The notes beneath the pieces were generated by a model. That model searched no databases. It saw only the letters and a list, made by a program, of their open reading frames with translations, and was not told the origin of the DNA. Position numbers and translations under genes: made by a program. A stretch of DNA of 64,000 bases from Pecten maximus (taxonomy: Eukaryota): contig NC_047024.1 of assembly GCF_902652985.1 (NCBI RefSeq), positions 4,030,001 to 4,094,000 on the forward strand, in the 5' to 3' direction. Positions 758-55,538 of this stretch are shown one piece after another; position 1 is the first letter of the stretch, and every line of letters begins with the position of its first letter.

Positions 758-1299
758 TTGCAGACACTGCAGTAGATGTCGGGCAGGGGTCTGGTGTCCT
801 GAGCCAAGAGACAGGTTCTGAGACGGGATTACGTCTGGATTTTACCTGTAACATCTGTCGGTTCACGACACCATCACATGACGCACTGCAACGACACATC
901 AAACAGCACCGGCCGCAAGCATCGCATGTCCAATACGACGCCCCATTCGCATGTGAAAGTTGTGGTAGGACATACAGAACTAAGACCGGCCTTAAACTTC
1001 ATGTCAATACAAAACATAAGTTGGAATTCCGTTTCACCTGTGAGATCTGCAATAAAGGGTTTAATGTGTTGTGTAACTTCCGGGGACACATGGCAAGCCA
1101 TAATAAAACATTTGTGGAAAAATGTGAGAAATGCGGATCAACATTTCCTCATCGGGAAAACCTAATCACACACGAAAAGTTCTGTGTTGGACACAAACTA
1201 TTCGCCTGTAAAAAATGTGGAAAATCTTTTAGTAACCATAGTAACCTGATGGAGCATATACTCACAAAACATGATGCAAAAAAATCTGGACCAAAATAA
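758..1299 (+). CDS. Putative alternative terminal exon 1: 5 zinc fingers (C2H2 plus one C2HC), 'type B' paralog of exon 11
   Basis: ORF 586..1299. Acceptor ttctctgtttAG at 756-757 (alternative ttgcAG 762-763), both phase 1. Five CxxC..H..H/C motifs; stop TAA. Confidence 0.82.
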
Positions 1300-1531
1300 C
1301 TTTTACCTGGAAATAGGTACACATAAACACTGAGGCTCTGTCATACACATGAGTGTCAGACTGCACATTGTCCATTTACAAGTGTCCGACAATGGCTACT
1401 TAGTCTCCACATTACGAGTGTCCTTGGCTACTTAGTCTCCACATTACGAGTGTCCGACAATGACAGCCCATTGTTGATTTACAAGTGTTAATCCCAAACA
1501 TTGTTCATAATTAATAAGTTTATTTGTTAAA

Positions 1532-1824
1532 CCGAATAGGACACAGACCATTGGTCAGTACAATTGGGGATATAATTGGTTGTATCAGGCCGAATAGGAC
1601 ACAGACCATTGGTCAGTACAATAGGGGATATAATTGGTTGTATCAGGCCGAATAGGACACAGACCATTGGTCAGTACAATTGGGGATATAATTGGTTGTA
1701 TCAGGCCGAATAGGACACAGACCATTGGTCAGTACAATAGGGGATATAATTGGTTGTATCAGGCCGAATAGGACACAGACCATTGGTCAGTACAATTGGG
1801 GATATAATTGGTTGTATCAGGCCG
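1532..1824. repeat. 58-bp tandem repeat, 5 copies
   Basis: ccgaataggacacagaccattggtcagtac... starts at 1532, 1590, 1648, 1706 and 1764. Confidence 0.92.
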
Positions 1825-1863
1825 TTTAAGGGGCTGCTTTCTACTAGCTTTATATAGGCTGTA

Positions 1864-2577
1864 GACTTGGACAGATAGACAGACACACACAAAACGGCTA
1901 TTGACCCTGGCTCGGACAGATGGACAGACACAGACGGAACATGACTATGAAGTGGAGGAAAATACCTATTCCTACAAACTCTGTAGATTTGCTGATCTGT
2001 TTATAAATACACTGTATATTATAGCCACTAGCTACCAGGTATTTAATATTTTGTATCCTACACTTCATAGTCATGTTCCGTCTGTCCATCTGTCCATCTG
2101 TCCGAGCCAGGGTCAATAGCCATTTTGTGTGTGTCGATCTGTCCATCTGTCCAAGTCAGGGTCAATATTCGTTTTGTGTGTGTCTGTCTATCTGTCCAAG
2201 TCAGGGTCAATAGTCATTTTGTGTGTGTCTGTCCACCTATCCAAGCCAGGGTCAACAGTCATTTTGTGTGTGTCTGTCCATCTATCCAAGTCAGGGTCAA
2301 CAGTCATTTTGTGTGTGTCTGTCCATCTATCCAAGTCAGGGTCAATAGTCGTTTTGTGTGTGTCTGTCCATCTGTCCAAGTCAGGGTCAACAGTCATTTT
2401 GTGTGTGTCTGTCCATCTATCCAAGTCAGGGTCAATAGTCGTTTTGTGTGTCTGTCCATCTGTCCAAGTCGGGGTCAATAGTCGTTTTGTGTGTCTGTAC
2501 ATCTATCCAAGCCAGGGTCAGTGGTCAGTGGTCATTGCTTTGTCTGTGTCTGTCCATCTGTCCAAGTCAAGGTCAGT
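1864..2577. repeat. ~90-bp inverted repeat (1864-1954 / 2061-2157) whose right arm continues as a 45-bp tandem array; MITE- or Helentron-like relic
   Basis: gacttggacaga...catgactatgaagtg mirrors cacttcatagtcatg...ctgtccaagtc. The unit caagtcagggtcaatagtcattttgtgtgtgtctgtccatctatc repeats about 10 times. Confidence 0.75.
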
Positions 2578-2590
2578 GGTAATTGGCTTT

Positions 2591-2961
2591 GGGTTCTGTC
2601 CCCCTGGCCGGGACATACCAGAGTCTTTAAAAATGGTAGTTGCTGCTCCTGCTTAGCGCTCAGCAAATAAGGAGTGGGATGACTGGTTCGCCCGTTGTCA
2701 GTATAATGTGACCGGGTGGGGTGTGTTGCTGGGTGTCTTCAGCAGTATGCTTCAGTGAGGTAGCACTCTAAATCGGCAAAAGATCCGGCCTATCACAAGG
2801 AGACTTCACACGAACATACCGCAGCCTCCCAAAACACACATACGCACTCGCTACACGCATACATGTCGCACGCACAGGAGGCCGTCCTTAAATGACCTTA
2901 GCTGTTAATAGGACGTTAAACAAACCAAACCAAACCAAACCAAACCAAACCAAACCAAACC
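2591..2961 (+). mobile_element. 5'-truncated SINE (resembles molluscan Meta-type SINEs) with (AAACC)n tail
   Basis: B-box-like gggttctgtcccc, central tggtagttgctgctcctgcttagcgctcagc, 3' ...ttagctgttaataggacgttaaa followed by an AAACC microsatellite. Family assignment is from recall, not a search. Confidence 0.6.
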
Positions 2962-3385
2962 ATTCCTTTGTCTGTGACCATGAATAGTAAACTAGTATAT
3001 TTGCATATCTCGGTAATTCTTCAACAGATCTAATTTGTTTATTAGTTCAGATTAGGTGTGGACCATGTGTACAATATTTAGGATCAGTGCTTCATATGAA
3101 GCCAAGACTTCTGCTGTAGTCAACCTAGCATGAGATTGAAAGGGAAGTCGACCAAAAAAAAGAGAGGGAGGGGGGAGGGAATTAATAGGGGACGATTATC
3201 AATCCAAGATATTGTAATTATGGTAGAGAGAGAATGAGAAAGTGGAAAGAATTGGAAGCTGTATAGATAGCAGAGTATGTTTTGTATTTCCACCATCATG
3301 TTCAGATGTTTGATTTTGAAAATAAATGTTGTAAAAAGAATAAATCGTTATCATTGAATTGAAAGACAATTTCTTATCTGTTCAG

Positions 3386-3942
3386 GTCCCCAGCCTGCCC
3401 CCGTGGGAGTCGCATCCTCCCTGACAACACAAATAACCATGGTGACTCATCCGGGCCCTGGTGGGGTACAGCAGGGGAACCAGGGGGCATATCGAGGGCC
3501 CCCAACAGGGGCTGAGGGGCAATGGTCCTATCACTGTGATATCTGCCCAAAGTCCTTTCTCACAAAGATGGAACTTAGTGTGCACCTAACACAGCACCAG
3601 CAGCAGAAGAGATATCGCTGTGGGATTTGTCGGTATTCCCTCTCAGACCGAAGTGTGCTGAGACAACACCTACTACAACATAGTAACGAGTTCACACACT
3701 TCTGTTATCCCTGTGGCAAGGGCTTCAAATCCTACACAGGCCACTATCGTCATGAAAAACTCTTCCATCGTCCACAAACCAACAACCCAAAGTGTCAGAT
3801 TTGTGGGCGACAGTTCCCAGATGACAGTAGTCTTAAAATCCACTACCGCAGACATTCTGACGATCGTCCATTTAAATGTGAAATGTGTGGAAAGTCTTAT
3901 AAACACAAGAAAAGTCTACAGGATCATACATGTATCCCATAG
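3386..3942 (+). CDS. Putative alternative terminal exon 2: 5 zinc fingers, last ends H-T-C
   Basis: Acceptor ttcttatctgttcAG at 3384-3385, phase 1 with ORF 3403..3942. HSDDRPFKC linker; stop TAG. Confidence 0.88.
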
Positions 3943-4113
3943 CAACAGGACCATACATATATCCCATAACAACAGGACCATACCTGTATCCCATAGCAAC
4001 AGGACCATACCTGTATCCCATAGCAACAGGACCATACCTGTATCCCATAGCAACAGGACCATACATGTATCCCATAGCAACAGACCATACATATATCCCA
4101 TAGCAACAGGACC
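3925..4113. repeat. 27-bp minisatellite that includes the last codons and stop of exon 2
   Basis: catacatgtatcccatagcaacaggac, about 7 copies. Confidence 0.88.
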
Positions 4114-5001
4114 AATCAAAGTACATTTGGAAAGCAAAGGTCATTACTGGATGACCTTCAGAACTGTGGAAAAAGAAAAAAAACTGATGTACATACCCCT
4201 TTTATACAGTATCAAACAAATTTGAGATTTCATTGACTAGTTGTCTTATACATTTCGTGTGAATGTTAATCGACTGCCATTAATTTGTATTACCTCAGTA
4301 TCATGTGGAGTACAAACTTAACACAAATATATTGGTGATCCTCATGTACCAGTGTATTGGATGGTGATTCTCCCAGGATTCCTAGTCTGTACCCATATTG
4401 TAGTGCTCTACAAACTCACGCCTTCCGGTGTATATACTGATGTATTTGGTCTGTGAGATTAGATTAAAGTATTGCTATACAAATCATCCTGTCTTCAGTG
4501 GTTTTTTCGTTGTGTATTTATCCTGAAATTATGACAAATAACTTGAAGGGAAATATAGTATTGGCCTATCGGTGAAAAACAGGGAACTTTACAATATGCC
4601 ATTTCTGACATGGTATGAGTTGTCATTAGGAACCTTACAATATAAATGTTTGTGATGGCCTGTGAAAGTTTTCATCTTTTACCTGTAAGTCCTATTGGTT
4701 TTATAACTGGCCGTTGACATATCTCAGCACATCTGATGTGTTTAAAGTGTTTTGTCATTCTATTTGAGTGGAAATTGTTGTACTCGGATCTGATATAGTC
4801 TGTATAGTCTGTATAGACCAGACCCTCAGGCCTGGCACTGTTCCTGTGTATAATGAACCTGTGTAATCAAGAAACCTGTTTTAACTGGAGGATTAGCTAG
4901 ATACCTAACTTTGACGTTGCTGTCACATACTCGTACATGCTTTCTATCTGATGCCGTATAGTGAGTATACCTTGACTGAAAGCCTCTTGTTTTGATTTCA
5001 G

Positions 5002-5558
5002 ATTTTCCTGTGGATTCTTTGTTGCAAGGCAGTGTTTTAGAAAACCCTGTCAATCTAAAGGGCCTCAACTGGGCCAAGCAGCACTTTGGTGGGGCTGAAC
5101 CTGACTCCCCAGGGAACAGACGCTTCAAAGGGCCCCACCCTGGAGAAGGGGATGGGGAGAAGACAGTTAAATGTGGTTTTTGTTACATGCCCCGAAGCAG
5201 TCGAGAGAGCCTGCGGGAACACATCACCACACACCATGGCGAGGAGTACCAACATATCTGTTATGACTGTGGTAAAGCCTACCGCTCCATGGCTGGCTAC
5301 CAGAAACACCGCAAGATCTACCACGGGGAGGGTCGTAACTGTGTAATCTGTCAGATATGTGGTAGTGTGTGTGCCAACAACAGCATGCTGATGAACCACA
5401 TGAGGTCACACACTGACGTGCGCCCCTACATGTGTAAACGTTGTGGCCGCTCCTACAAGTACAAAAGTCACCTCAACGAGCATGAGCGGAACTGTTCAAC
5501 CAGTGAACAAAGCTCACAGCCCTCACAGCCATCACAGTCACAGGAGAACACAGAATGA
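5002..5558 (+). CDS. Putative alternative terminal exon 3: 4 zinc fingers
   Basis: Acceptor cttgttttgatttcAG at 5000-5001, phase 1. HTDVRPYMC linker; stop TGA. Confidence 0.88.
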
Positions 5559-5589
5559 GTCTGGTAAATGTTCGACCATTAATCTGTCT

Positions 5590-6385
5590 TTACCACCACA
5601 ATAACCCCTATAACATTGTGTTACCACCACAATAACCCCTCCACATTGTCTTTACCACCACAATAGCGCCTCCACATTGTGTTACCACCACAATAGCCCC
5701 TACCACATTGTGTTACCATCAACAATAGCCCCCTACCACATTGTGTTACCATCAACAATAGCCCCTCCACAATAACTCCTACCACATTGTGTTACCATCA
5801 ACAATAGCCCCCTACCACATTGTGTTACCATCAACAATAGCCCCTACCACATTGTGTTACCATCAACAATAGCCCCCTACCACATTGTGTTACCATCAAC
5901 AATAGCCCCCTACCACATTGTGTTACCATCAACAATAGCCCCTACCACATTGTGTTACCATCAACAATAGCCCCCTACCACATTGTGTTACCATCAACAA
6001 TAGCCCCCTACCACATTGTGTTATCACCACAATAGCCCCTACCACATTGTGTTACCATCAACAATAGCCCCCTACCACATTGTGTTACCATCAACAATAG
6101 CCCCCTACCACATTGTGTTATCACCACAATAGCCCCTACCACATTGTGTTACCATCAACAATAGCCCCCTACCACATTGTGTTACCATCAACAATAGCCC
6201 CCTACCACATTGTGTTATCACCACAATAACCCCTACCACATTGTGTTACCATCAACAATAGCCCCCTACCACATTGTGTCACCATCAACAATAGCCCCTC
6301 CACAATAACCCCTACCACATTGTGTTACCATCCAAAATGATCCGTACCACATGTGTTACCTTCCACAATAGCCCCTATCACATTG
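5590..6385. repeat. ~32-bp minisatellite
   Basis: ccacattgtgttaccatcaacaatagccccta repeated. Confidence 0.92.
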
Positions 6386-6622
6386 TATTGATATAGATAA
6401 CTATATATAGATACCCTATGAAGTGATGTTAACAAGACAATAGCTGTCATGGCTTGATCTACAATACCATATATCTGAAATCATTTACATTGTATAAGTT
6501 AACTACATGATTCAATGCATGAATCCACAGTGAATTTCTGTTACTGTTTTGTCTGGTTTTTAAGAATATCTGATTTTATGAAAATGATAGGGAAGGAATG
6601 GTAAGTTCCATACTTGTATTCC

Positions 6623-7590: not shown

Positions 7591-7759
7591 AGGCCAAAAT
7601 GTTAATTTACTGCAGGTTTCAAGGCATTGAAAGTTTTTGGTGGAAAATGCTGGGCTAGCAAGGGTTGGATTTCTGAACTTACTTTCCTGCTTTCTAGTCT
7701 CATCTGAGCTTTGAATATATAGATTACTTGGTATATATTTAAAGGCTGTCTGGTTAGAC

Positions 7760-8400: not shown

Positions 8401-8746
8401 ATTATACCATTATTCACCAGTAAGAGAGGTAGTACAAGTTTCTTAGTGAGGATGTATGAATATATTATGCCAAATCTACCACAGGTACACTGATAGATGC
8501 CAGTCTTTGAATGTTGATGAAGAACTTAAAACTGAAGGTGGAACATATCAACACTTTCTTTGAAACATTTATTAAATGTGTAAAACAGACCAATTAGTTG
8601 ACAGTCTGATTGAAATATTTGTTGGATGTATAAGACATGCCAATTAGTTTGTATTATTTCTAAAATCAATCTTAAGTTTCCCTGTTCCTTTTCTATCCAA
8701 TGACCTTTATCGTATGACTGAAGGTCTCACATTGTCTTTTGGTCAG

Positions 8747-9255
8747 GTGATGCCAGAAACACGGGACAGGGAGCCACCATGGATCTTGGGACCTATGTGG
8801 ATAATTTCTATGAGAACAATAGTATGACTACACCAGTGACACAGTCAGCAGGATTTCAACATCAGTTTGTTCAAGGTCATGGAGTTACAAGGTCATTGGA
8901 AGGTCAAGGGGAGATTTCATGTGGATTGTGTTTAGTTTGTTGTAGAGGTAGAGAGGAATTCCGAGATCATGTGTTATTAAGTCACGGCGACCAGTACACA
9001 CACCTGTGTTACGACTGTGGTAAACTGTTCAGGTCCTATCAGGGCTACAAGAAACACGAGAAACTGTATCATCGTGGCGGAGTAGACTGTAAGTCGTGCG
9101 AGATTTGTGGCAAACAATTTCCAGACGATAGCAGTCTTAAAAAGCACAGACTAAAACACACTGGGGATCGACCTTTTGCGTGTGACAAATGTGGCAAAAC
9201 GTATAAACATCGGAGTAATCTTAAAGATCATTCTTGTGTGGGATTTCCTTCATAA
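8747..9255 (+). CDS. Putative alternative terminal exon 4: 4 zinc fingers; near-duplicate of exon 5
   Basis: Acceptor ttgtcttttggtcAG at 8745-8746, phase 1 with ORF 8779..9255. AATAAA at 9267-9272. Confidence 0.88.
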
Positions 9256-9440
9256 CAAGTTCACACAATAAATTCACACAAATGGGCAGAGGTACTCATA
9301 GTTTTGTGTGACTCACAAGGTCCTTAGATAATATTATCGTGGAACAAAAAATATAATGCCAGTTTGTATGCTTCAGAATACACAGAACCGCTGTGTAGAA
9401 TTCAGAATACACAGAACTGCTGTGTAGAAACTGTTGTGGA

Positions 9441-9618
9441 TGTCTGCTGAAGTTTTAATTGGCCTTTAAGTCGATCTCCACTGCAGTGGTTTGCTATAAG
9501 TGTCTGAAGTTTTAATTGGCCTTTAAGTCGATCTCCACTGCAGTGGTTTGCTATAAGTGTCTGAAGTTTGAATTGGCCTTTAAGTCGATCTCCACTGCAG
9601 TGGTTTGCTATAAGTGTC
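9441..9618. repeat. 57-bp tandem repeat, 3 copies
   Basis: tgaagttttaattggcctttaagtcgatctccactgcagtggtttgctataagtgtc x3. Confidence 0.88.
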
Positions 9619-10603
9619 GGATGATGAACAGAATCTTGTATTTGTAACATGGCTAGTCGCTGTAAACAAGGTGCCCAGAGAAGTTGTTGCTCAGACACAG
9701 TTTGACTGTGTTAATTTTTATATGTTATTATTGGACTTAATGAATTCCACCATCTAGAAGCAGCAGGGAGCTTGTTTATGTGTGATGAAGTATTTTAAGA
9801 TCAGTATTACCAACTATACTGTTTCCTACAATACCTTGGCTGGATATAAAGGTGATGTTGACCCAATGAACAGTCGGTATTGTATGAATCTACTTGTATA
9901 GATATGTTGCACTTCCATGGTAGGAATTGCAGGTGACAGTATGTATATAATGTTCCAAATAAAATGTGTTGGTATGTATATAATGTTCCAAATAAAATGT
10001 GTTGATTTCAGAAAATCAGGTTTTTGTTTGATATGCTTGTGTTGGATAATTACTAAGACTGCAGTGGTAATGAGTTCTTATGTCATGAGTCATAAGAATC
10101 TCGAGTGATTTATTGATAGATTTTTTTGACAATTTGGTGGTAGCTACATACATATGACCTTGACCTTCCAATTTATCTATATAATGAATTTATAATAACT
10201 GACACTATTGACCTTGACATCACAATTTTATGCTTGACTGACTTGATATCATTTTGATCAATAAGCCATACTGCGTGTGTTGTCTGTGACCTGACCTTGT
10301 GATTTATTACAGATCAGTGGTCAGTATGGGATCCTATCATCAGTAGTCACAATATTATATTTGACCACCAATAAAAATATGATACATTGTTATTTACACA
10401 TGACTATCGGATGAAGCACTACGTACGGGTATAATACAAGGTCTGAGGCTGTTGTTTCTAGCTATAGATGATGATTGATGACCAAGCTTGTGCACGTCTA
10501 TTTGTTTAAGCCTCATTAACCAAATATCTTTATTTATACCTGTTTCCTTTGTTTCTTGTGACATTTGACTGAAGGTCATTGTTTCACATTGTCTTTTGGT
10601 CAG

Positions 10604-11103
10604 GTGATGCCAGAAACACGGGACAGGGAGCCACCATGGATCTTGGGACCTATGTGGATAATTTCTATGAGAACAATAGTATGACTACACCAGTGACACA
10701 GTCAGCAGGATTTCAACATCAGTTTGTTCAAGGTCATGGAGTTACAAGGTCATTGGAAGGTCAAGGGGAGATTTCATGTGGATTGTGTTTAGTTTGTTGT
10801 AGAGGTAGAGAGGAATTCCGAGATCATGTGTTATTAAGTCACGGCGACCAGTACACACACCTGTGTTACGACTGTGGTAAGCTGTTCAGGTCCTATCAGG
10901 GCTACAAGAAACACGAGAAACTGTATCATCGTGGCGGAGTAGACTGTAAGTCGTGCGAGATTTGTGGCAGGACGTTTCCTGATGACAGTAGTCTGAAACA
11001 ACACAGACTAAAGCACACTGATGAACGACCCTTCAGCTGTGACAAATGTGGCAAATCTTACAAGTATAGGAATACACTCAAAGATCATTCCTGTATCGGC
11101 TAA
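10604..11103 (+). CDS. Putative alternative terminal exon 5: 4 zinc fingers
   Basis: Acceptor ttgtcttttggtcAG at 10602-10603, phase 1. First ~365 coding nt nearly identical to exon 4. Confidence 0.88.
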
Positions 11104-12804: not shown

Positions 12805-13343
12805 GTGATGATTCAAGTCTGGAACAGCTCATTAACATCCAATCAAGCTCCAGTGATAGTTACAAAGACCCCTCCAGTGCACTGCAGTCTGGATATAGTG
12901 GACAGTACAAAGGTCAAGGCCACCCCAATGAAGTACTAACGGAGAGTGAAGGTCAAAGGTCACTAGCGGTCAATAGAGAGTTGGGTATATTTGCCTGTGC
13001 TCTGTGTCTGACAGGTTGTCGAGGACGACAGGGATTGAGGATGCATGTGTTGTCCCATCATGGCCCAGAATATACACATATCTGTTTTGAATGTGGTGGA
13101 CGCTTGTTCAAGTCATATCAAGGATATAAAAAACATGAGAAATTGTGTCATCGTGGTGGTCTAGACTGTAAAACTTGTCAAGTGTGTGGCAAGTCATTCC
13201 CCAATGACAGCAGTCTAAAACAGCACTTACAGAAACACACAGATGATCGTCCCTTCTCCTGTGACAAGTGTGGAAAGAATTATAAGTTTATCAACAGTCT
13301 TAGGACCCACACATGTGTTTTACCAATGAATCCACAGTCCTAG
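12805..13343 (+). CDS. Putative alternative terminal exon 6: 4 zinc fingers
   Basis: Acceptor ttgtctttggttAG at 12803-12804, phase 1. Frame is open from there (GDDSSLEQLI...) into ORF 12981..13343. Confidence 0.88.
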
Positions 13344-13386: not shown

Positions 13387-13935
13387 TACCTCCTAGGAAT
13401 ATCTGACACTTATTACCTCCCGGGAATACCTGACACTTTGTACCTCCTCGGAATACCTGACACTTTGTATCTATCGGGAATACCTGACACTTTGTACCTC
13501 CCTGGAATACCCGACACTTTGTACCTCCTCAGAATACCTGACACTTTGTACCTCCCTGGAATACCCGACACTTTGTACCTCCCGGGAATACCTGACACTT
13601 TGTACCTCCCGGGAATACCTGACACTTTGTACCTCCCGGGAATACCTGACACTTTGTACCTCCCGGGAATACCTGACACTTTGTACCTCCCGGGAATACC
13701 TGACCTCCTAGGAATACCTGACACTTTGTACCTCCTGGGAATACCTGACACTTTGTACCTTTCGGGAATACCTGACACTTTGTACCTCCCGGGAATACCT
13801 GACACTTTGTACCCCCGGGAATACCTGACACTTTGTACCTCCCGGGAATACCCGACACTTTGTACCTCCCGGGAATACCTGACACTTGGTACTTCCCAGA
13901 AATATCACTTTGTACCTCCCGGGAATACCTGACTT
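13387..13935. repeat. 27-bp minisatellite
   Basis: tacctcccgggaatacctgacactttg, about 20 copies. Confidence 0.93.
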
Positions 13936-14371: not shown

Positions 14372-14925
14372 GTGATGCTGTGGATCCAAGCCAAGGTCAA
14401 ATCACCGATCTGGGATCATTCACGGATAGTTACTACAGGAATGCAATGACTACAGGTGCCAATGCAATGCCTTCATCAGGATTTATTGTACAACAGTTAG
14501 GTCAAGGTCATGGACAGACAATTTCACAACAGAGCCAAGGTCAAATTCTTACAAAAGTTCAGGGTCATATTGGTTCGAATGTTTATGGTTGTGGACAGTG
14601 TCTATTACGATGTGAAGGTAAAGAGGGATTACGTAAGCATGTTTTAGATGTTCATGGTGCACAGTTTACCCATATCTGTTTTGATTGTGGTAAACTGTTC
14701 AAGTCCTACCAAGGCTACAAGAAACATGAGAAATTCCTACATAGAGATGGTGGTGATTTCAAGAGGTGTCCAATATGTGGTCGGAACTTCCCTAATGACA
14801 GTAGTCTCAAACAGCACCAACTGAAGCACGCAGATAGCAAACCATACACCTGTGATAAGTGTGGCAGATCCTACAAGTATCTAACCTCCCTCCACTACCA
14901 CACCTGTGTCACACAGGGACAGTAA
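14372..14925 (+). CDS. Putative alternative terminal exon 7: 4 zinc fingers
   Basis: Acceptor cttatcttttggtcAG at 14370-14371, phase 1 with ORF 14380..14925. Confidence 0.88.
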
Positions 14926-19700: not shown

Positions 19701-20302
19701 GTGATGCTTCCACCAAAGGGCCGTCTCAAGATCTCTACCTGTCTAATGTCAAGTCAGCCAAGAAGTCTGCAACAAGATATTTGGACCAATCTTTAATTCA
19801 AGGTCATGGAATTGCTGCATTGCAAGGTCAAGGTCATGGCAATGACAAGTTCCAAGGTCAAGGACAGGCTAATCAACTAGGTCAAAGTCATATCAATACA
19901 ACATCAAATATAAATCAAGGGCCTGTATTTCCCTCTGGTCAGGGCCGCGTGGGTCCAAACCTATATGGCTGTGGATTGTGTCTGGTTGTTTGTCATGGTA
20001 AAGAGGGTTTACGAGACCATGTTTGGTCATGTCATGGAACACAGTTCAGGTATATCTGTTACGAATGTGGTAAAGTGTTCAGGTCCTACCATGGACACAA
20101 GAAACATGACAAGTTGGTACACCAGGGAGGGGTAGACTGTAAGACCTGTCAGATCTGTGGTAAAGTGTTCATCGATAACAGCAGTCTTAAACACCATCTA
20201 CACACACATTCTGACGACCGCCCATTCACCTGTGATAAGTGTGGAAAATCTTACAAGTATGCTACAACGCTAAAGGAACATGTATGTGTACGGATCCAGT
20301 GA
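19701..20302 (+). CDS. Putative alternative terminal exon 8: QG-rich linker plus 4 zinc fingers
   Basis: Acceptor cttgtctttggttAG at 19699-19700, phase 1 with ORF 19670..20302. Confidence 0.88.
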
Positions 20303-21191: not shown

Positions 21192-21592
21192 GTTTGTCCC
21201 CCTCTGACAGTGCGGGCTTGTTTTATCCTTCTCACACTGAGAGAACACAGTTTGCCTGTCAAATCTGCAAGATTATCCAATACTTCCCCGACATGGGAAG
21301 TTTGCGGGACCATATTTTATCACGCCACAAGGAAGACTACCAGGAGTTCTGTTTGCTATGTGGCAAGGGCTTCAAATCTGTCAGCGGGTTCAGCGACCAC
21401 CAAAAAATATATCATGGTTCTGGTAAACAGAAATTTTGTTGTGAAGTTTGTGGTAAATGTGTAGCACGAAAAAGTCACCTTGAGGTACACATGCGCCGCC
21501 ACTCTGATGTCCGGTCCTTTGGCTGCCTTACTTGTATGAAATCATTTAAACACAAACACCAGCTCCGGCACCACGTCTGTTTCCCTGAATAG
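21192..21592 (+). CDS. Putative alternative terminal exon 9: 4 zinc fingers
   Basis: Acceptor catcttttgttttctatAG at 21190-21191, phase 1 with ORF 21065..21592. Confidence 0.87.
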
Positions 21593-22249: not shown

Positions 22250-22671
22250 GGATGACAGACAGAGAGATGAAGAAGTTGGGGCCGGACTGGGATTTGGAAG
22301 AAGAGAAGGACAGGGAAGAAGAAGAGAAGGTGCGGAAATATAGCTGCAACATCTGTCTGCATTCCTACTCCCAGATTGACCTACTCAAGGAGCACTTGCT
22401 CGTTAATCATGGCACTGAGTTCTCACTCTTTTGTTTCGAGTGTGGCAAAGGCTTTAAATCTGCTGGAGGATTAAAAGGTCACAGAAAGGTCACACATTCT
22501 GATGGAGCAGATGTACATGAGTGTGATATTTGTGGCAGAGTTTTCCCGCATAAGAGTAACCTCAATTCACACATGGTTAGTCACTCGGATCACCGTCCCT
22601 TCTTGTGTAAAGTCTGTGGAAAATCATACAAACGAAAACAGAACTATAAAGAACATATGTGTAATTTGTAA
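22250..22671 (+). CDS. Putative alternative terminal exon 10: acidic linker plus 4 zinc fingers
   Basis: Acceptor cttttgtttatatccatAG at 22248-22249 (alternative 22221-22222), both phase 1. Confidence 0.86.
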
Positions 22672-26514: not shown

Positions 26515-27240
26515 GGCATCACATTTCCACAATAGAGTGGCATCACATTGTCATCAGTATGGCATCACATGATCACAACTATGTGGCACCACATTGTTAC
26601 AACAGTGTGGCATCACATTGACAACAATGTGGCACCTCATCATGTCAGTGTGGCATCACATGGTCACAACAATGTGGCATCCCATGATTACAACAATGTG
26701 GCATCACATTGACACAACAGTGGCACCTCGTCATGTCAGTGTGGCATCACATTGTCACAACAGTGTGGCATCACATTGACAACAATGTGGCACCTCGTCA
26801 TGTCAGTGTGGCATCACATTGTCACAACAGTGTGGCATCACATTGACAACAATGTGGCACCTCATCATGTCAGGTGGCATTACATGGTCACAACAATGTG
26901 GCATCACATGGTCACAACAATGTGGCATCACATTTACACCACAGTGTGGCATCACATTTACACAACAGTGTGGCACCTCATCATGTCAGTGTGGCATCAC
27001 ATTGTCACATAATATTGTTAAAACAGTTTGGCACCACATTGTCACACACAACAGTGTGGTGCCACATTGTTACAGTATGGCATTACATTGTCACACCAGA
27101 ATGGTGCCAAATTGTTACAACAGGTGGCACCACATTGTCAGAGCAGGTGTCACCACACTGTCACAGCGGGTGGCACCACATTGTCACAGCGGGTGGCACC
27201 ACATTGTCACAACAGAGTGGCAACCATATTGTCACACAGA
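26515..27240. repeat. Degenerate ~21-24-bp minisatellite
   Basis: tgtggcatcacattgtcacaacag-like units. Confidence 0.85.
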
Positions 27241-27599
27241 ATGGCATTGCTGCTTTTAAATGTTAAGCCTGTTCATTCAGTTCTACAAACACTACACCAT
27301 GTCAGATTATTTCTATACAGTGTTATCCCCTGCTCATGAAAGGGGATCACGATACTTGGGGATTATGAATTACATAGCTGTCACACAATCCACATAGGCT
27401 GTTTTCTATTTATAAAACATCTGAATCTGATGTCTGTTGAGGGAGGTTTAGAGTGACGATAACATCTTCAGATGTACTTAATACATAGACTTAGTTCTTG
27501 TTTTCATACAGGATAAAGGTTTTAAGATTTAAAAATAGTTAAAGGTCAAACTTTATGTCTATAGAGGTTTAAATTTTAACAACAACAAATATTTAAAAG

Positions 27600-28221: not shown

Positions 28222-28850
28222 ATCCCAAAGTGAAATTAGAAACATCTGAAATGGGTTCCTTTGAAGTTCCATCCAATTATTTACAGACACAATGGTCAGA
28301 GGAGACTTCGGGCTCTGAGACACCGATATCATATATGACCACCATTTCCAGTCCAGAAACCATGATGACCTTGACCCCTTGTGGCCCAGACATGAAATGT
28401 CCTGAGTGTGATTTCGTGACAAGTAAAATGTATGTAATGATTAGGCACAGACAGAGCCATTCTGTGCAAACGTTCAAATGTTCCAGATGTCCGAAGTCTT
28501 ATACAAACAAGTCTCAACTCGATAAACATGTACGCTTCAAACACACAGGTCAAGGTCATCTGGTGTGTGACCTCTGTGGTAGAAAGTACACTAGTAACAC
28601 TGGCCTGCGGATGCACAAGCAGAGCGTGCATGAGCATCGATACAACTACCAATGTGAAATCTGTGATAAGAAGTTCATGCATCTGAGTCACTACAAGGGC
28701 CACGTGAGCTCGCATTACTCTGTCAAGCCCGAGCTTTGTACCATGTGTGGTAAAAGCTTCCGTTTTGCCCAGGATCTCTCTCGCCATATTAAAATCTGTG
28801 GCAACCAAACAGGAATAGTATCGAAAAGAAGGTCTGATAGCAACACTTAA
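28222..28850 (+). CDS. Putative alternative terminal exon 11: 5 zinc fingers, 'type B' paralog of exon 1
   Basis: Acceptor cttttatttatttttcAG at 28220-28221, phase 1 with ORF 28230..28850. Confidence 0.88.
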
Positions 28851-36667: not shown

Positions 36668-37206
36668 GTGAGATGAGCCCGGGGGGAGAGGACGACCACA
36701 CCCTGGGGATAGAGCTTGGACCTGTAAGGACTGTGAAGAGGTACCCCTGTTCTCAATGCCAGAAGATCTGTAAGACTCCAGAAGACCTGATCCGACACCA
36801 GACCATTCACCAAAAGCCCATTATTGTTTGCCGTATTTGTGAAAATCTTTCGTTTCCTACACCACAAAATCTGAAGGACCATCTGATCCAACATCATGGC
36901 CATGAATTTACACACTTCTGTTTCCAGTGTGGTAAGGGTTTCAAGTCGGACGCAGGCATCAAGGATCACCAAAAGGTGTACCATGTGACCTCGTTAGAAT
37001 GCCCGGTGTGTGAAGTGTGCGGGAAATCTTTTGCCTTGAGGAATCGTCTAGTGGTACACATGCGAAGTCATTCCCATCAACGTCCATTTATCTGCCCCCA
37101 TTGTGGCAAAGCCTACAAGCACAAACATGGATTAAAAACTCACATTCAGACAAGTTGCCTCCCCTCAATGGGTGCCTCATACAACCCTAACGACAACATC
37201 CAGTGA
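36668..37206 (+). CDS. Putative alternative terminal exon 12: 5 zinc fingers
   Basis: Acceptor ttttatctcccgtctAG at 36666-36667, phase 1 with ORF 36673..37206. Confidence 0.88.
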
Positions 37207-38634: not shown

Positions 38635-39610
38635 TAACACACAGGTACACATCATTTACCTGTACCCCATACAGGTACAAATCATACACCTGTACCCCAT
38701 ACAGGTACACATCATACATCTGTACAATATACAGGTACACATCATTTACCTGTACCCCATACAAGTACACATCATACACCTGTACCCCATACAGGTACAA
38801 ATCATACACCTGTACCCCATACAGGTACAAATCATACACCTGTACAATATACAGGTACACATCATACACCTGTACAATATACAGGTACACATCATACACC
38901 TGTACAATATACAGGTACACATCATACACCTGTACAATATACAGGTACACATCATACACCTATACAATATACAGGTACACACCATACACCTATACAATAT
39001 ACAGGTACACATCATACACCTGTACAATATACAGGTACACACCATACACCTGTACAATATACAGGTACACATCATACACCTGTACAATATACAGGTACAC
39101 ATCATTAAGTTGTACAATATACAGGTACACATCATACACCTGTACAATATACAGGTACACATCATACACCTGTACAATATACAGGTACACATCATACACC
39201 TGTACAATATACAGGTACACATCATACACCTGTACAATATACAGGTACACATCATACACCTGTACAATATACAGGTACACATCATTAAGTTGTACAATAT
39301 ACAGGTACACATCATACACCTGTACAATATACAGGTACACATCATTAAGTTGTACAATATACAGGTACACATCATACACCTGTACAATATACAGGTACAC
39401 ATCATTAAGTTGTACAATATACAGGTACACATCATTAAGTTGTACAATATACAGGTACACATCATACACCTGTACAATGTACAGGTACACATCATACACC
39501 TGTACAATGTACAGGTACACATCATACACCTGTACAATATACAGGTACACATCATTAAGTTGTACAATATACAGGTACACATCATTAAGTTGTACAATAT
39601 ACAGGTACAA
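38635..39610. repeat. 30-bp minisatellite, about 32 copies
   Basis: acaggtacacatcatacacctgtacaatat repeated. Confidence 0.95.
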
Positions 39611-39842
39611 GATCTTTTGTGTGATTACAGTTACTTACGGTAGTTACATTATGCAGAATTTAGTATTCAGCCAATTTGTGTATAATGAGTTACAGCTAGA
39701 GTTCCATGTAATTTTGTTATGTTGATTTAACTAAAGTGCAGAATTCTGCCATCACTATTGTTTTAAGTACAATGCTATAAACTGTGTATATATACATCAG
39801 TGTTGTGTTGACCTTATTCTAGCCTGAGGTTCTCTTTTCCAG

Positions 39843-40354
39843 CCGAGACTGATGAGGAAGGAGCACCAGATGAGCTTGGAGAAGAAACCAAAACCTTGCC
39901 TGAGACGCACTTCTGTCCGATATGCAATGTGCCATTCAAATCGAAAAAACGTTTGGGGAACCACATCCTATTCCATAGGGAGACATTACATCGCTGTACC
40001 CTCTGTGACATACGTTTCACCAGTCGAGAAACACTCAAAGATCACATGTTGAGCATCCATAGCAGCCAGTTCTACCATTTTTGTTTTGATTGTGGTAAGG
40101 CTTTCAAGTCTTATTCTGGCTTCAACGACCACAACAAGACAAACCATGGCACGGGCGCCCACAAATGTGACGTCTGCGGCAAGTCTTTCTCCTGTAACAG
40201 CCGACTTCTTGTCCACAAACGTAGTCACTCCAATGAGCGACCATTTGTGTGCAACAGATGTGGTCGTCGATACAAACACAAAAAGCCATACAGGGACCAT
40301 GTGTGTATCTACCAGCAGCCAAGTGATGATCCGGACTTTGTCGTAAAGTACTAA
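39843..40354 (+). CDS. Putative alternative terminal exon 13: 5 zinc fingers; paralog of exon 14
   Basis: Acceptor ttctcttttccAG at 39841-39842, phase 1. Frame is open (AETDEEGAPDELGEETK) into ORF 39896..40354. Confidence 0.88.
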
Positions 40355-48767: not shown

Positions 48768-49848
48768 TGCCACATACATACAGAGATTTCAGAAACAGAG
48801 ACCACCTTCTTAATGCCACGTGTATAGAAAGATTTCAGAAAAAGAGATCATGCTCCTTCTTGTAACCACATACTTACAGAAAGTTCAGAAACAGAGACCA
48901 GCTTACTGGTGCCACATACATACAGAGATTCCAGAAACAGAGATCACCTTGGTGCCACATACATACAGAGATTTCAGAAACATCACCTTCTTGGTGCCAC
49001 ATATATACAGTAAAGAGATTCCAGAAGCAGAGATCACTTTCTTGATGCCACATACAGAGATTCCAGAAACAGAGACCACCTTCTTGGTGCCACATACAGA
49101 GATTTCAGAAACAGAGACCACCTTCTTGGTGCCACATATATACAGAGATTCCAGAAACAGAGACCACCTTCTTGGTGCCACATATATACAGAGATTCCAG
49201 AAACAGAGACCACCTTCTTGGTGCCACATACATACAGAGATTCCAGAAACAGAGATCACCTTCTTGGTGCCACATATATACAGTATAGAGATTACCTTCT
49301 TGATGCCACATACATACAGAGATTTCAGAAACAGAGACCACCTTCTTGATGCCACATACAGAGATTTCAGAAACAGAGACCACCTTCTTGGTGCCACATA
49401 CAGAGATTTCAGAAACAGAGACCACCTTCTTGGTGCCACATACATAAAAGAGATTTCAGAAGCAGAGACCACCTTCTTGATGCCACATACAGAGATTTCA
49501 GAAACAGAGACCACATTCTTGGTGCCACATACAGAGATTCCAGAAAGAGAGATCACCTTCTTGGTGCCACATACAGAGATTTCAGAAACAGAGACCACCT
49601 TCTTGGTGCCACATACATAAAAGAGATTTCAGAAGCAGAGACCACCTTCTTAATGCCACATTCATAAAAGAGATTTCAGAAACAGAGACCACCTTCTTGG
49701 TGCCACATACATACAGAGATTCCAGAAACAGAGATCACATTATTGATGCCACATACATACAGAGATTCCAGAAACAGAGATCACCCTCTTGGTGCCACAT
49801 ACATAAAAGAGATTTCAGAAACAGAGACCACCTTCTTAATGCCACATA
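48768..49848. repeat. ~42-46-bp minisatellite
   Basis: gccacatacagagatttcagaaacagagaccaccttcttggt repeated. Confidence 0.93.
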
Positions 49849-49859
49849 ATGTCTTTGCT

Positions 49860-49998
49860 GTCGTGGTTGTGTCCTTGGGCAAGACACTTTACCCTAATTG
49901 CTCTCGATGGCATTAATCGGGCCTCCTGTATGTTGGTCAGTGAGGGAGTCACCAACTACTACAAGAAGACACTGCCTCAAAATGACCCTGGCAGTGTA
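49860..49998 (+). mobile_element. CORE-SINE fragment
   Basis: gtgtccttgggcaagacactttaccct resembles the CORE domain (tgtgaccttgggcaagtcacttaacc). aaatgaccctggcagtg resembles the 3' end of the SINE at ~2890. Confidence 0.55.
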
Positions 49999-50484
49999 CA
50001 GTAAAAAAGCCCAATTCTGAAAAATAAGGCACAGAAAAATGATGCCTCACAATCAAGTTTTTCAGCAATCTTACCTTGATTGTGAGACACCATTTTTCGC
50101 TGTAGGCAAAACTGAATTTCCTGTGTAAACACTTTCGGAAAATCCGTGAATTTAAAATCCGAAACTGATTTACATAATGTATTTATTTTAGTTTTAACAA
50201 ATGTGAAGTCTGTATGTACTACATAATAATGAATATACCAATTATAGTGTACATTTATTTTTTCAATTTTTATGCATATCATGCATAATACAGGAGTTAT
50301 TTGTTTCACAAAACATTTGCCCATGGCCAGGCAGTCTTTCTGTGATCTGCAACCTCAAGGGGGGATACACTGAGCCAACAAACAAACAAAGTTTAACATA
50401 AAGATTCTAAAGATATTTTATTTACTATGTCCACTATCTATATGTCCAAGAGCAGTATAAAGGACAAGAAATTTGGTCGCAGCC

Positions 50485-52632
50485 TCTGTCACCGACACAA
50501 TTGATCCTTTGTTTTGGTTCTTTGTCACCCACACAATTGATCCTTTGTCTTGGTTCTGTCACCCATACAATCGATCCTTTGTCTTGACTTTGTCACCCAC
50601 ACAATTGATCCTTTGTCTTGACTTTGTCACCCACACAATTGATCCTTTGTCTTGACTCTGTCACCCACACAATTGATCCTTTGTCTTGACTTTGTCACCG
50701 ACACAATTGATCCTTTGGTTTTGGTTCTTTGTCACCCACACAATTGATCCTTTGTCTTGACTCTGTCACCCACACAATTGATCCTTTGTCTTGACTTTGT
50801 CACCCACACAATTGATCCTTTGTCTTGGTTCTGTCACCCACACAATTGATCCTTTGTCTTGACTTTGTCACCGACACAATTGATCCTTTGTCTTGACTCT
50901 GTCACCCACACAATTGATCCTTTGTCTTGGTTCTGTCACCCACACAATTGATCCTTTTTCTTGACTCTGTCACCCACACAATTGATCCTTTGTCTTGACT
51001 CTGTCACCCACACAATTGATCCTTTGTCTTGACTTTGTCACCCACACAATCGATCCTTTGTCTTGACTCTGTCACCCACACAATTGATCCTTTGTCTTGA
51101 CTCTGTCACCCACACAATTGATCCTTTGTCTTGACTCTGTCACCCACACAATTGATCCTTTGTCTTGGTTCTGTCACCCACACAATTGATCCTTTGTCTT
51201 GACTCTGTCACCCACACAATTGATCCTTTGTCTTGGTTCTGTCACCGACACAATTGATCCTTTGTCTTGACTTTGTCACCGACACAATTGATCCTTTGTC
51301 TTGGTTCTGTCACCCACACAATTGATCCTTTGTCTTGGTTCTGTCACCCACACAATTGATCCTTTGTCTTGGTTCTGTCACCGACACAATTGATCCTTTG
51401 TCTTGAATTTGTCACCCACACAATTGATCCTGTCTTGACTTTGTCACCGACACAATTGATCCTTTGTCTTGGTTCTGTCACCCACACAATTGATCCTTTG
51501 TTTTGGTTCTGTCACCAACACAATTGATCCTTTGTCTTGGTTCTGTCACCGACACAATTGATCCTTTGTCTTGACTTTGTCACCGACACAATTGATCCTT
51601 TGTCTTGGTTCTGTCACCCACACAATTGATCCTTTGTCTTGGTTCTGTCACCGACACAATTGATCCTTTGTCTTGACTTTGTCACCGACACAATTGATCC
51701 TTTATTTTGGTTCTTTGTCACCCACACAATTGATCCTTTGTCTTGGTTCTGTCACCCACACAATTGATCCTTTGTCTTGACTCTGTCACCCACACAATTG
51801 ATCCTTTGTCTTGACTCTGTCACCCACACAATTGATCCTTTGTCTTGGTTCTGTCACCGACACAATTGATCCTTTGTCTTGACTTTGTCACCGACACAAT
51901 TGATCCTTTGTCTTGACTTTGTCACCGACACAATTGATCCTTTGTTTTGGTTCTTTGTCACCCACACAATTGATCCTTTGTCTTGACTCTGTCACCCACA
52001 CAATTGATCCTTTGTCTTGACTCTGTCACCCACACAATTGATCCTTTGTCTTGACTTTGTCACCCACACAATTGATCCTTTGTCTTGACTCTGTCACCCA
52101 CACAATTGATCCTTTGTCTTGACTTTGTCACCCACACAATTGATCCTTTGTCTTGACTCTGTCACCCACACAATTGATCCTTTGTCTTGACTCTGTCACC
52201 CACACAATTGATCCTTTGTCTTGACTTTGTCACCCACACAATTGATCCTTTGTCTTGACTTTGTCACCCACACAATTGATCCTTTGTCTTGACTCTGTCA
52301 CCCACACAATTGATCCTTTGTCTTGACTCTGTCACCCACACAATTGATCCTTTGTCTTGACTCTGTCACCCACACAATTGATCCTTTGTCTTGACTCTGT
52401 CACCCACACAATTGATCCTTTGTCTTGACTCTGTCACCCACACAATTGATCCTTTGTCTTGACTCTGTCACCCACACAATTGATCCTTTGTCTTGACTCT
52501 GTCACTCACACAATCGATCCTTTGTCTTGACTCTGTCACCCACACAATTGATCCTTTGTTTTGGTTCTTTGTCACCAACACAATTTATTCTTTGTCTTGA
52601 CTTTGTCACCCACACAACTGATCATTTGTCTT
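50485..52632. repeat. 34-bp minisatellite, about 63 copies
   Basis: tgtcacccacacaattgatcctttgtcttgactc repeated. Confidence 0.96.
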
Positions 52633-53619
52633 GATGAACAACTGATTGAAAAAAAAAACTTACTTGTATTACTGATGCTTTTACATATGTGATCGAGCAG
52701 ATATATTTACAATAAATTTAATACAGTTAAAATTTGAATTGACTTAATGTAGATTGAGGTACAAGATTTATTGTACAGATAGACGTACCCCAGAGGATGT
52801 GATAGATGTCTTAGAGAGATAGTGAGGTCACAATTTCATCCTAAGCATGGTCAGGGTATTTCTCTTTACTCATTGGCCAGTGTAAGCTATATTGGATTGC
52901 CAGGATTCCTTTGAGCTAAAGATCCAGGGTTTGTGGTTGTCTTTGGGGACTGACTTTGTGAAGGAAGGAGTTTTGTAAAAGTGGAGAGTAAAGGTCACTT
53001 TGCTCATGTTAAATGACCTCAGCCTTGTGGTAGGTCATCACCTTGAGTGAAGCCTCAGTACAGACAGGACCTCATTCACTACTTATTTGTATAAAAACCG
53101 ATAAACCAACAGAGACAATCGTACAATAGTAAGCTAGATATTTTAAAGTGACTATAAACTCATTAAACATTGATTTCTTCTTAGAAATAATGAAATGGGT
53201 TTAAGATATAAAGATGCACGAGTCTATACCATAAAAGGAGACAGATGAATGGAGTCACAAGGGTGTAAGTGATGAGTCCCCACAGCATTCTGCTTGTGAA
53301 CGGTAACATATCTGTATGTATTCTTGTTGGACGTACTGAATTATTGTTTTGCACTGACATAAGTATTTACAAAACACAGTTGCTGACACTTGTAATTGTC
53401 CTAATAAGGAAAGTCTTAGTTTTAAGATACATTTATTAAAAATATTATGCCTGATGATATTTTCCAATTGATTTTTACAGTTAAAGTTGCTTCAATAAGC
53501 CAGTTGTGTTTTTTAATTACATACCTTTTGTGATAAAACCCAAGTGGCCGGTACGATTTTGCCTGTGTTTACATTGTTACCATGGTACTCAGATACTTGT
53601 TACTTTTGTCTCTCTGTAG

Positions 53620-54092
53620 ATGGCGCTGACAGCGTTGGCCTGCTCCTGGGCGCAGAAGACACTGACAGCCATTCAGAGAAGACATCCGAATTCTCATGTC
53701 CCCTGTGTCATAAAGACTTCCCGACATCCTACAATCTGTGGCAACACATGCAGAGCCACCAGTATAGGTGTTCTATATGTGAGAAAGGGTTCGAGGACAA
53801 GGAGACATTGAGTCGACACCTACTGTCTATACACAGTGAGGAATTCTACCACTTCTGTTTTGAATGTGGTAAGGGTTTTAAATCCTACTCTGGAATCAAT
53901 GACCATAGAAAGACATACCATGGAATGGGTGACCACAAGTGTGATATCTGTGCCAAGTCTTTCTCCTGCAACAGTCGGCTTCTCGTTCATAAGAAGAGCC
54001 ATTCTGACGAACGACCATTCGTCTGCTTGAGCTGTGGAAGGTCCTACAAACACAAGAAGGATTTGCGAGATCATTTCTGTGCCTATACCTAG
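53620..54092 (+). CDS. Putative alternative terminal exon 14: 5 zinc fingers; paralog of exon 13
   Basis: Acceptor cttttgtctctctgtAG at 53618-53619, phase 1. Shares KSFSCNSRLLVHK with exon 13. Confidence 0.88.
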
Positions 54093-55182
54093 TCACGTCT
54101 ACTGGAGGTGTTCTGTAAGCTGTGATTAGTGATCCTCAGTATGTCAGATATTCTTCTTCCCTGCTCATTTATATTCCAAAATGACTGGGCTTGGATGATA
54201 ATACATCCCTGTTAAAGGGATATTCCACACAATTTGTAAAAATTCTCTTCTGTACCTGTTAATAACACTTTTAAAACTATTGTGAGTGTCAAAATATCTT
54301 ACCTTTGGTCAGTTTGGACAAGGTTGGAAATACTCCTGGTCAATATATAATTAGACCACCCTGATACCTAGAGACTTTATGAAGCCTGGACCTGAAGGCT
54401 CGCTGGTTTACAGTTCTGGGTAAAAACATGTGGATTACATGCTGTTCACTTGTAATTTTTGCTGGGATTACAATTTCATTTCCTCAAGATGATTTCTTGT
54501 CAATTTTATAATGAAACAAACTATTTCATACTTTTTGACTCCATCAAAGCAAACCAGTCTGAACACTATGCCTGTGTCTGCTTATACCGAAAATAACGAG
54601 GGGTTCCAATTGAAAACAAACCTGTTATGACATTACCATGGCCACATGCATGTTTGTAATTTGATATAGTTAGATCTGTAAAGAATTCAAAGAATTCCCA
54701 CAAATTAAATATCATACGTTTGTTTATATTTTAAATTGAGGCGTTCGATTTCTGTCAGAACATGCAAATTGTATAAAACACATCTAATGAAATACTTACT
54801 TGTGCAAAATATCAAATGAAGGGTAGACATGGAATTTTCATAATACTGTCACATTCACCCTCTCTAGCTTATTACAACCAGATAATTTAGTACTGAGTGA
54901 TTTTATCCTTTACACATTGTTTTTTAATCAGAAACCACTTAATTGAGAAAGATTTTGGACCATGTCCATCGTATAAAGGAGGCAGACATTTGACTTGTCC
55001 CATCATTAATGGAGACAGACATAAGGGGGGGGGGGGGGTTGGCTGAGGGAATGTAGATATTGAAATCTGAACAGCGCTGACTATTGTGTATTATATTAAA
55101 TTCTTTATTTCAGATACTAGTGGTAATTAAAATGTTTTGTTAGAGTAGCCCAGTAATAGGATTATCGTTTTCTATGTTACAG

Positions 55183-55538
55183 GTCAGATGTGGTCCATCC
55201 CTCCTCCGCTGGAGCGTGACGTATGCCATCAGGTAGCTGTTGGACTCTCCGATTGGCCTGATGCGTCAAATCCAGTAGAACACCAGTTAGTCCGTGTGCC
55301 TGGTCTCAATCGAGCTTGTGGGTTTTGTCGAATCAGCCGTAATAAGACAAAGCAAGGGTATGCAAGAAAGTCGTACTACCAGTGTCAAGTGTGTGCTGTA
55401 CCGCTATGCCGCGGCAACTGTTTCGATTACTACCATGAACTGGTGAATGAACACCGACAATTTGCTTGTTCGGTGAGAGCTATGTATAAAATGTTACTAA
55501 AGAAATTCTCCTACCACCAGAGAGAACTAGGGACTTGA
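55183..55538 (+). CDS. Putative alternative terminal exon 15: piggyBac-transposase-type C-terminal cysteine-rich zinc-binding domain
   Basis: Acceptor cgttttctatgttacAG at 55181-55182, phase 1. RACGFC...RKSYYQCQVCAVPLCRGNCFDYYH fits the PGBD C-terminal pattern (CxxC...CxxCxVPLC...CFxxYH). No DDD core or TIRs seen nearby. Confidence 0.78.

Follow-up and report, generated by a model that had tools for sequence, protein, structure and literature searches.

A BTB gene of the scallop Pecten maximus with a probable array of about 48 alternative DNA-binding terminal exons

Introduction

The 64,000-nucleotide stretch of Pecten maximus DNA analysed here (C10:4030001-4094000, plus strand; hereafter the window) carries 15 open reading frame (ORF) blocks on one strand, each of which opens behind a splice acceptor and closes with its own stop codon. 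A single gene, known in RefSeq as LOC117336858, very probably has about 48 alternative 3'-terminal exons, of which these blocks are the last 15; its three constant exons lie at approximately C10:3980155-3982562, 48 kilobases (kb) upstream of the window, and encode a BTB domain. The array of terminal exons occupies one strand and reaches back to C10:3984260, which is 46 kb before the window starts. For this reason the initial annotation, which was made from the window sequence and proposed at least 15 isoforms, was right about the 15 exons but understated the scale of the array. Its central proposal, of one transcription-factor gene in which constant exons are combined with swappable DNA-binding terminal exons, is supported by a splice donor, by RefSeq isoforms, by orthologous isoform tails and by a contig that crosses the junction. 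Alongside the window we took in 90 kb of upstream and 30 kb of downstream sequence, and the P. maximus DNA compared amounts to 184 kb in total. Positions given below without the C10 prefix are counted from the first base of the window.

Organisation of the locus

The constant part of LOC117336858 is encoded by three exons on the plus strand. The first (approximately C10:3980155-3980295) supplies the N-terminus, the second (C10:3980700-3982033) contains the BTB match and a Ser/Pro-rich linker and ends in a phase-2 donor, and the third (C10:3982267-3982562) encodes an acidic stretch and ends at the donor AAAG/GTAGGA, in phase 1. This donor, at C10:3982562/3, is the sole phase-1 donor of the constant part; upstream constant exons ending in such a donor, and carrying a BTB or another domain, had been predicted from the window. 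The BTB model PF00651 matches both the open frame at C10:3980700-3982033 and residues 21-121 of every isoform tested. The resulting constant protein of 585 residues consists of a BTB domain of the classical dimerising transcription-factor type, a Ser/Pro-rich linker of about 350 residues and the acidic stretch.

Downstream of the constant exons, the variable exons encode predicted DNA-binding modules, mostly of three to five C2H2 fingers. By module class, the LOC117336858 array comprises approximately 43 C2H2 exons, one zf-Tnp_2 exon, one BEN-like exon and three exons resembling C17orf113. The BEN-like exon lies upstream of the window as the first cassette of the array (RefSeq X25) and scores 23.1 bits against a Pfam cut-off of 23.2, while the three terminal exons at C10:3987811, 3988373 and 3991698 (RefSeq X29, X27 and X28), which have no C2H2 finger, score 27-28 bits against the probable zinc finger of C17orf113, under its cut-off of 29.5. 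As these exons stand beside C2H2 and zf-Tnp_2 exons, the array appears to mix at least four module types. A finger-motif scan found no minus-strand finger blocks between C10:3984260 and 4085538, and the three minus-strand blocks that it did find belong to the neighbouring gene LOC117336493.

Acceptors and reading phase of the terminal exons

In all 15 window blocks a YAG follows a pyrimidine-rich tract, with its G at the base reported in the initial annotation (757, 3385, 5001, 8746, 10603, 12804, 14371, 19700, 21191, 22249, 28221, 36667, 39842, 53619 and 55182). When that G is taken as codon position 1, the frame stays open in every block as far as its own stop (1299, 3942, 5558, 9255, 11103, 13343, 14925, 20302, 21592, 22671, 28850, 37206, 40354, 54092 and 55538), giving tails of 118-209 residues, so that the acceptors, their common phase 1 and the separate stops are all confirmed on the sequence. 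The blocks were also said to lack, in many cases, an in-frame start, and indeed no in-frame Met precedes the first finger in seven of the 15, while one is present in the other eight. A Pfam scan covered nine of the window blocks, namely eight finger blocks and block 15; all eight finger exons scanned matched the C2H2 model PF00096 at 38.9-77.6 bits, against a cut-off of 25.2, and the remaining six finger exons have three or four finger motifs each by motif scan. That motif scan returned 14 finger blocks in the window, none of which had been overlooked.

Because the acceptors had been picked with the frames known, we scored AG dinucleotides in a manner blind to frame. In all 42 finger blocks of the array, every AG in the interval from the preceding in-frame stop to the first finger was given a pyrimidine-tract score, irrespective of phase. 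The top-scoring AG was in phase 1 in 38 of the 42 blocks, where one third would be expected (binomial P = 1.7e-14), in agreement with a phase common to all acceptors. In the window, the blind choice coincided with the acceptor picked by eye in 11 of the 14 finger blocks. The three misses were 19700, which ranked second, 28221, which tied with two other AGs and was listed last of these, and 757, which fell outside the top three; these acceptors are instead fixed by RefSeq or orthologous isoforms. Many acceptors are preceded, at 25-35 nucleotides, by a recurring yTGAw element, which we considered as a selector sequence and set aside, as it reads as an ordinary branch point.

RefSeq isoforms and orthologous tails

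RefSeq lists 33 isoforms of LOC117336858 (X1-X33), of which 30 were recovered in a search with the BTB exon. Each of the 30 consists of the identical 585 residues followed by the translation of one genomic exon, matching letter for letter from acceptor to stop. None of them chains two terminal exons, as is expected if these exons are mutually exclusive, which was how they had been described. Nine of the acceptors chosen in the window (3385, 5001, 8746, 12804, 19700, 21191, 22249, 28221 and 36667) are used exactly by RefSeq isoforms. The isoform numbers follow length, and therefore the unrecovered X9 and X6 fit the exons behind acceptors 757 and 14371, respectively; the same ordering leaves no slot for acceptors 10603, 39842, 53619 and 55182.

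The expectation that automated annotation would split the array into separate genes was mistaken for P. maximus, where NCBI Gnomon models one gene with 33 isoforms. Some annotations do split off single exons, as with OWF43294.1 (148 residues, Mizuhopecten) and XP_060086354.1 (176 residues, Ylistrum), and RefSeq names each isoform after a different unrelated protein. One cassette upstream of the window, at C10:4011820-4012296, has a RefSeq tail (X33) of just 64 residues with one finger, followed by a separate finger frame of 122 residues. It seems to have been broken by a frame change in P. maximus, to judge from an alignment in which the Mizuhopecten counterpart X40 extends over both parts.

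For the orthologous gene the isoforms number at least 36 (Ylistrum balloti), 49 (Mizuhopecten yessoensis) and 45 (Argopecten irradians). A total of 150 isoform tails were mapped onto the P. maximus DNA. All but one of the 48 candidate exons proved to be the best match of at least one orthologous tail. Nearly all of these orthologous tails begin at the acceptor, the few exceptions lying within a few residues of it, and every one of the 15 window exons has an orthologous tail that starts at the junction, including those outside the RefSeq set of P. maximus. This exon-by-exon correspondence indicates that the cassettes predate the split of the four scallop genera and have since been retained individually. 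Between species the zinc-finger part of the tails, taken from the first CxxC onward, is 87% identical and the linkers are 67% identical, a difference which points to constraint on the binding module.

Transcript evidence

Contigs from four sequencing runs were inspected over exons 53620 and 55183, the two least supported, with the flanking minisatellites avoided. That the runs are RNA is the guess of the tool used, and this guess is supported by the exon-only coverage and by the presence of a junction. The contigs cover 53620-54130 and 55171-55610 and beyond, and on the introns before both exons there are no contigs apart from two short repeat matches. Those two, the short high-depth pieces at 54215-54232 and 54453-54479, were not accepted as transcript. 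Four Logan-derived proteins of 198 residues were also discarded as junction evidence; they start in translated intron and so are uninformative on splicing.

One contig aligns to 53618-53789 with 11 loose letters in front. These letters together with the first two aligned bases are the last 13 bases of constant exon 3, a string which occurs once in the 184 kb, at C10:3982550-3982562, where it ends at the donor, and which is distinct from the corresponding exon ends in the two paralogs examined. This contig directly shows the constant donor joined to acceptor 53619 over a distance of 101 kb, more than 40 other acceptors being passed over in favour of an exon that is absent from RefSeq. Exon 55183 is covered by contigs of four runs, none of which lies on the approximately 690 intron bases directly upstream. 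The joining of window acceptors to one upstream donor, which the initial annotation expected to see in junction reads, was therefore observed for 53619 but not for 55182.

Several points weigh against assigning all of these exons to one gene. The RefSeq isoforms are computed models, and the assignment of exons 10604 and 39843 in P. maximus comes from orthology. Direct observation of a junction in the window is limited to one contig, in which the overhang is 11 letters long, and the run it comes from is RNA by the guess of the tool. The contigs over exon 55183 include no junction, and one of them starts 12 nucleotides before the AG, unspliced; it could be pre-mRNA, DNA or a separate precursor. 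Lastly, the hexamers AATAAA and ATTAAA, sought within 1.5 kb past each stop, are lacking after many exons and, by a rough estimate for AT-rich DNA, are no more frequent than chance, so that they provide no evidence on 3' ends.

The terminal exons of the window

All 15 window exons are on the plus strand. The first (758-1299) has a tail of 180 residues with five finger motifs of a class shared with exon 28222, and a Pfam C2H2 match; orthologous tails begin one residue past the junction in Ylistrum X4 (83% identity) and Argopecten X7, and by its length it would correspond to RefSeq X9. Two AGs stand 6 nucleotides apart at this exon, with their G at 757 and 763 and both in phase 1, and the orthologous models take the first; as a tandem acceptor, the pair could lengthen or shorten the tail by two residues. 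Exons 3386-3942 (X5; Pfam C2H2), 5002-5558 (X4, XP_033753449.1) and 8747-9255 (X13) encode C2H2 fingers and match RefSeq tails exactly. Exon 10604-11103, also with C2H2 fingers and an open frame, is outside the RefSeq set of P. maximus; its acceptor context is identical to that of exon 8747, and orthologous tails start from its junction in Mizuhopecten X23 (86%) and Ylistrum X9 (80%).

Exons 8747 and 10604 resemble each other closely. Window positions 8727-9112 and 10584-10969 are identical over 386 nucleotides bar one mismatch, a tract which runs from 19 nucleotides before the acceptor G to 366 after it and which gives way to approximately 76-88% identity over the last two fingers. The introns farther upstream are out of register, and each exon has its own Ylistrum ortholog (X8 and X9). 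On these alignments the two look like old twins that have undergone gene conversion, rather than a recent duplication.

Further along the array, exon 12805-13343 (C2H2) matches RefSeq X11 (XP_033753457.1) exactly, and exon 14372-14925 (Pfam C2H2), for which three orthologous tails (74-83%) start from the junction, would by length be X6. Exon 19701-20302 (X3, exact match) joins its C2H2 fingers to a long Gln/Gly-rich linker and contains no Met anywhere. Exact tail matches are again found for the C2H2 exons 21192-21592 (X30, XP_033753479.1), 22250-22671 (X26, XP_033753474.1), 28222-28850 (X2, with five finger motifs and a Pfam C2H2 match) and 36668-37206 (X10, XP_033753455.1). The last two C2H2 exons are outside the P. 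maximus RefSeq set: 39843-40354 (Pfam C2H2) has the tail of Argopecten irradians X28 (77%) starting from its junction, and 53620-54092, for which the splice is seen in an RNA-type contig, is orthologous to Mizuhopecten X26 (79%).

The array ends with exon 55183-55538, which encodes a piggyBac-type cysteine-rich zinc finger scoring 30.9 bits against zf-Tnp_2 (PF13842, cut-off 24). Its orthologous tails are Mizuhopecten X47 (XP_021368318.1, 89%, starting one residue past the junction) and Argopecten X43 (83%). In the 1.1 kb before it (54093-55181) there is no ORF longer than 49 residues; no transposase core therefore adjoins the exon, although in a piggyBac transposase the finger would follow a DDE_Tnp_1_7 core, and the finger stands alone as a cassette. 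A transposon descent is suggested by the family name.

Other long ORFs of the window, at 2129-2656, 13438-13932, 26819-27259, 39110-39643 and 48820-49620 and three on the minus strand, have neither a Pfam match nor an orthologous tail, and for this reason these eight were not counted as extra terminal exons. Two long minisatellites, with units of 34 and 35 nucleotides in dozens of copies, occupy 52000-52680 and 55614 to approximately 57800. The second starts 76 nucleotides past the stop of the last exon, and an RNA-type contig extends into it, which makes it a probable part of the 3' untranslated region of exon 55183. Just beyond the end of the array, on the minus strand at 59273-63880, an open frame of 1535 residues with a Pao retrotransposon peptidase (PF05380, E = 5e-45) and DUF5641 identifies a long terminal repeat retrotransposon of the BEL/Pao type.

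Mechanism and alternative explanations

On the arrangement described, one phase-1 donor is joined to one of approximately 48 phase-1 acceptors, and the chosen exon brings its linker, module and stop. Each terminal exon would have its own 3' end, and if no donor is used downstream of the chosen exon the choice would be mutually exclusive. Selection could be made in cis, with a near acceptor spliced and the transcript then cleaved there, as against read-through to the farther ones. Dimerisation through the BTB domain may in addition pair the isoforms, as the ZBTB proteins, which are the closest solved BTB relatives, are known to dimerise, and one locus would then yield a large set of DNA-binding specificities.

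Three other explanations can be set against this one. The best of them, which we nevertheless consider unlikely, is that some window exons, the candidates being 10604, 39843 and 55183, are disused and decaying cassettes in P. maximus. By the length-ordered numbering none of the three belongs to the 33 RefSeq isoforms, the contigs over 55183 show no junction, and the exon at C10:4011820, cut to 64 residues where its Mizuhopecten counterpart runs on, suggests that such decay may occur. However, the three have intact frames, good acceptors and orthologous tails of 77-89% identity, exon 55183 has contig coverage from four runs, and exon 53620, which is likewise outside RefSeq, proved to be spliced.

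It is a little less probable still that the isoforms are made by trans-splicing, the constant and terminal exons being transcribed separately. This is how the closest known systems operate in Drosophila, since all mRNAs of mod(mdg4) arise by trans-splicing (PMC13490949) and lola uses it as well (PMC11426971, PMC13490949). The cis introns required here would be very long, at 48-103 kb for the window exons, and the unspliced contig start before 55183 would fit a separate precursor, although it would fit pre-mRNA equally. Against this, no separate promoters are known, and every one of the 48 exons follows the constant exons on their own strand, none being antisense, so that cis-splicing is enough and nothing here calls for trans-splicing.

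Finally, a tandem array of separate small zinc-finger genes with their own promoters and 5' exons, the multi-isoform gene being an annotation artefact, would account for the stand-alone models OWF43294.1 and XP_060086354.1 and for the Met before the first finger in eight exons, but is very improbable given the seven exons with no usable Met, a uniform phase (P = 1.7e-14) that matches one upstream donor, the junction seen directly in a contig, annotations of four species that agree exon by exon, and a spacer before 53619 that is free of transcript contigs.

Comparison with known systems

The initial annotation likened the array to Drosophila lola and mod(mdg4), and the likeness holds for the design of the locus but not for the type of BTB domain. 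The arthropod-specific TTK type, to which the BTB domains of lola and mod(mdg4) belong, is marked by the motif FxLRWN; F.LRW is absent from the first 140 residues in all seven proteins in which it was sought, namely the scallop protein, three of its scallop paralogs and one relative each from a mussel, an oyster and a freshwater mussel. Among the best 60 chains, the nearest solved BTB domains are mainly those of vertebrate ZBTB17, BACH1/2, BCL6, ZBTB5/7A/8A, myoneurin and KLHL/KEAP1, with ZBTB17/Miz-1, BCL6 and BACH1 the closest (E = 3e-12 to 1e-5), and none is from Drosophila. In the Atlas, too, the look-alikes of the scallop BTB are chordate BTB clusters. The scallop BTB is thus not of the TTK type, and what is shared with the Drosophila genes is a design and not membership of a family.

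With the ZBTB and BACH proteins the scallop protein shares the order of an N-terminal BTB domain, a long disordered linker and C-terminal C2H2 fingers. Vertebrate ZBTB and BACH genes are known to carry a single, fixed set of fingers apiece, their diversity arising from the number of genes; the scallop gene, in contrast, swaps its finger array by exon choice.

In both lola and the scallop gene, constant 5' BTB exons are followed by alternative 3' exons that mostly encode C2H2 fingers, and many specificities come from one gene. The tails of lola contain a pair of fingers and those of the scallop three to five, and some 20 lola isoforms compare with approximately 48 scallop exons. On its constant BTB exons lola builds 20 isoforms, 17 of which have C2H2 fingers (PMC11426971), and mod(mdg4) combines a BTB part with 30 or more alternative terminal exons, each bearing one DNA-binding or interaction module (PMC11426971, PMC13490949). 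The mod(mdg4) tails are mostly FLYWCH, whereas those of the scallop are mostly C2H2, yet both arrays use modules that have transposon kin. FLYWCH domains have relatives in transposons. Antisense exons occur in mod(mdg4), and none in the scallop array.

Paralogs and other bivalves

At least three further multi-isoform paralogs are present in P. maximus, namely LOC117336493, LOC117336857 and LOC117336489. LOC117336493 (C10:3967855-3970047, minus strand) is arranged head to head with LOC117336858, their first exons being approximately 10 kb apart, and LOC117336857 (C10:4107268-4109020, plus strand) follows in tandem 22 kb past the array and has an exon array of its own from approximately C10:4119813. 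Further BTB matches of like kind occur at C10:3843294, 25860651 and 25874285. The donor context and phase 1 are common to LOC117336858 and the two paralogs examined, LOC117336493 and LOC117336857. In the paralogs many tails are of the zf-Tnp_2 or BEN type, which are commoner there than in LOC117336858, and C2H2 tails are rarer.

Across paralogs and orthologs, including Mizuhopecten LOC110459976 and Mytilus LOC134685596, the constant part is 52-93% identical, and these loci are annotated, in database models, with many isoforms that differ in their tail. Relatives with many isoforms also occur in Mytilus species and in Ostrea edulis. Among freshwater mussels, Sinanodonta and Potamilus have related proteins, one of the genes extending over 108.7 kb, and a Sinanodonta relative has a weak DUF3504 match in its tail.

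Implications

The scallop design is real, conserved and probably independently evolved, and already visible in public databases as RefSeq models. A literature search found no published description of this gene design in molluscs, in keeping with the initial annotation, which knew of none; a 2025 oyster paper states that nothing had been published on oyster BTB genes. On a wider reading, which we favour by a narrow measure, bivalves have independently evolved their own system resembling lola and mod(mdg4) on a classical BTB domain, with at least four clustered paralogs per genome, 20-50 terminal exons in each and well over a hundred isoforms. Transposon modules (the piggyBac finger, BEN and perhaps a Crypton-type DUF3504) would have been captured repeatedly, and the array of approximately 48 exons would be the largest of its kind and previously undescribed.

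In the arthropod literature, the swapping of DNA-binding domains by terminal exon is a hallmark of TTK-type BTB genes; the paper that defined the TTK group treats multi-isoform BTB factors as a TTK trait and detected no TTK motif in Mollusca (PMC11426971). The bivalve version uses another type of BTB, exceeds both lola and mod(mdg4) in number of cassettes and, among scallops, is conserved at the level of single exons, with transposon-type fingers serving as ordinary cassettes. At such loci the isoform names are misleading. The loci also inflate or distort the numbers of zinc-finger and BTB genes counted in mollusc genomes. The gene would provide a second, independent system in which to ask how one donor comes to be joined to one acceptor out of dozens within 100 kb, and whether such a design brings trans-splicing with it. 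The occurrence of the design in bivalves argues that evolution can arrive at it repeatedly where many DNA-binding specificities are needed.

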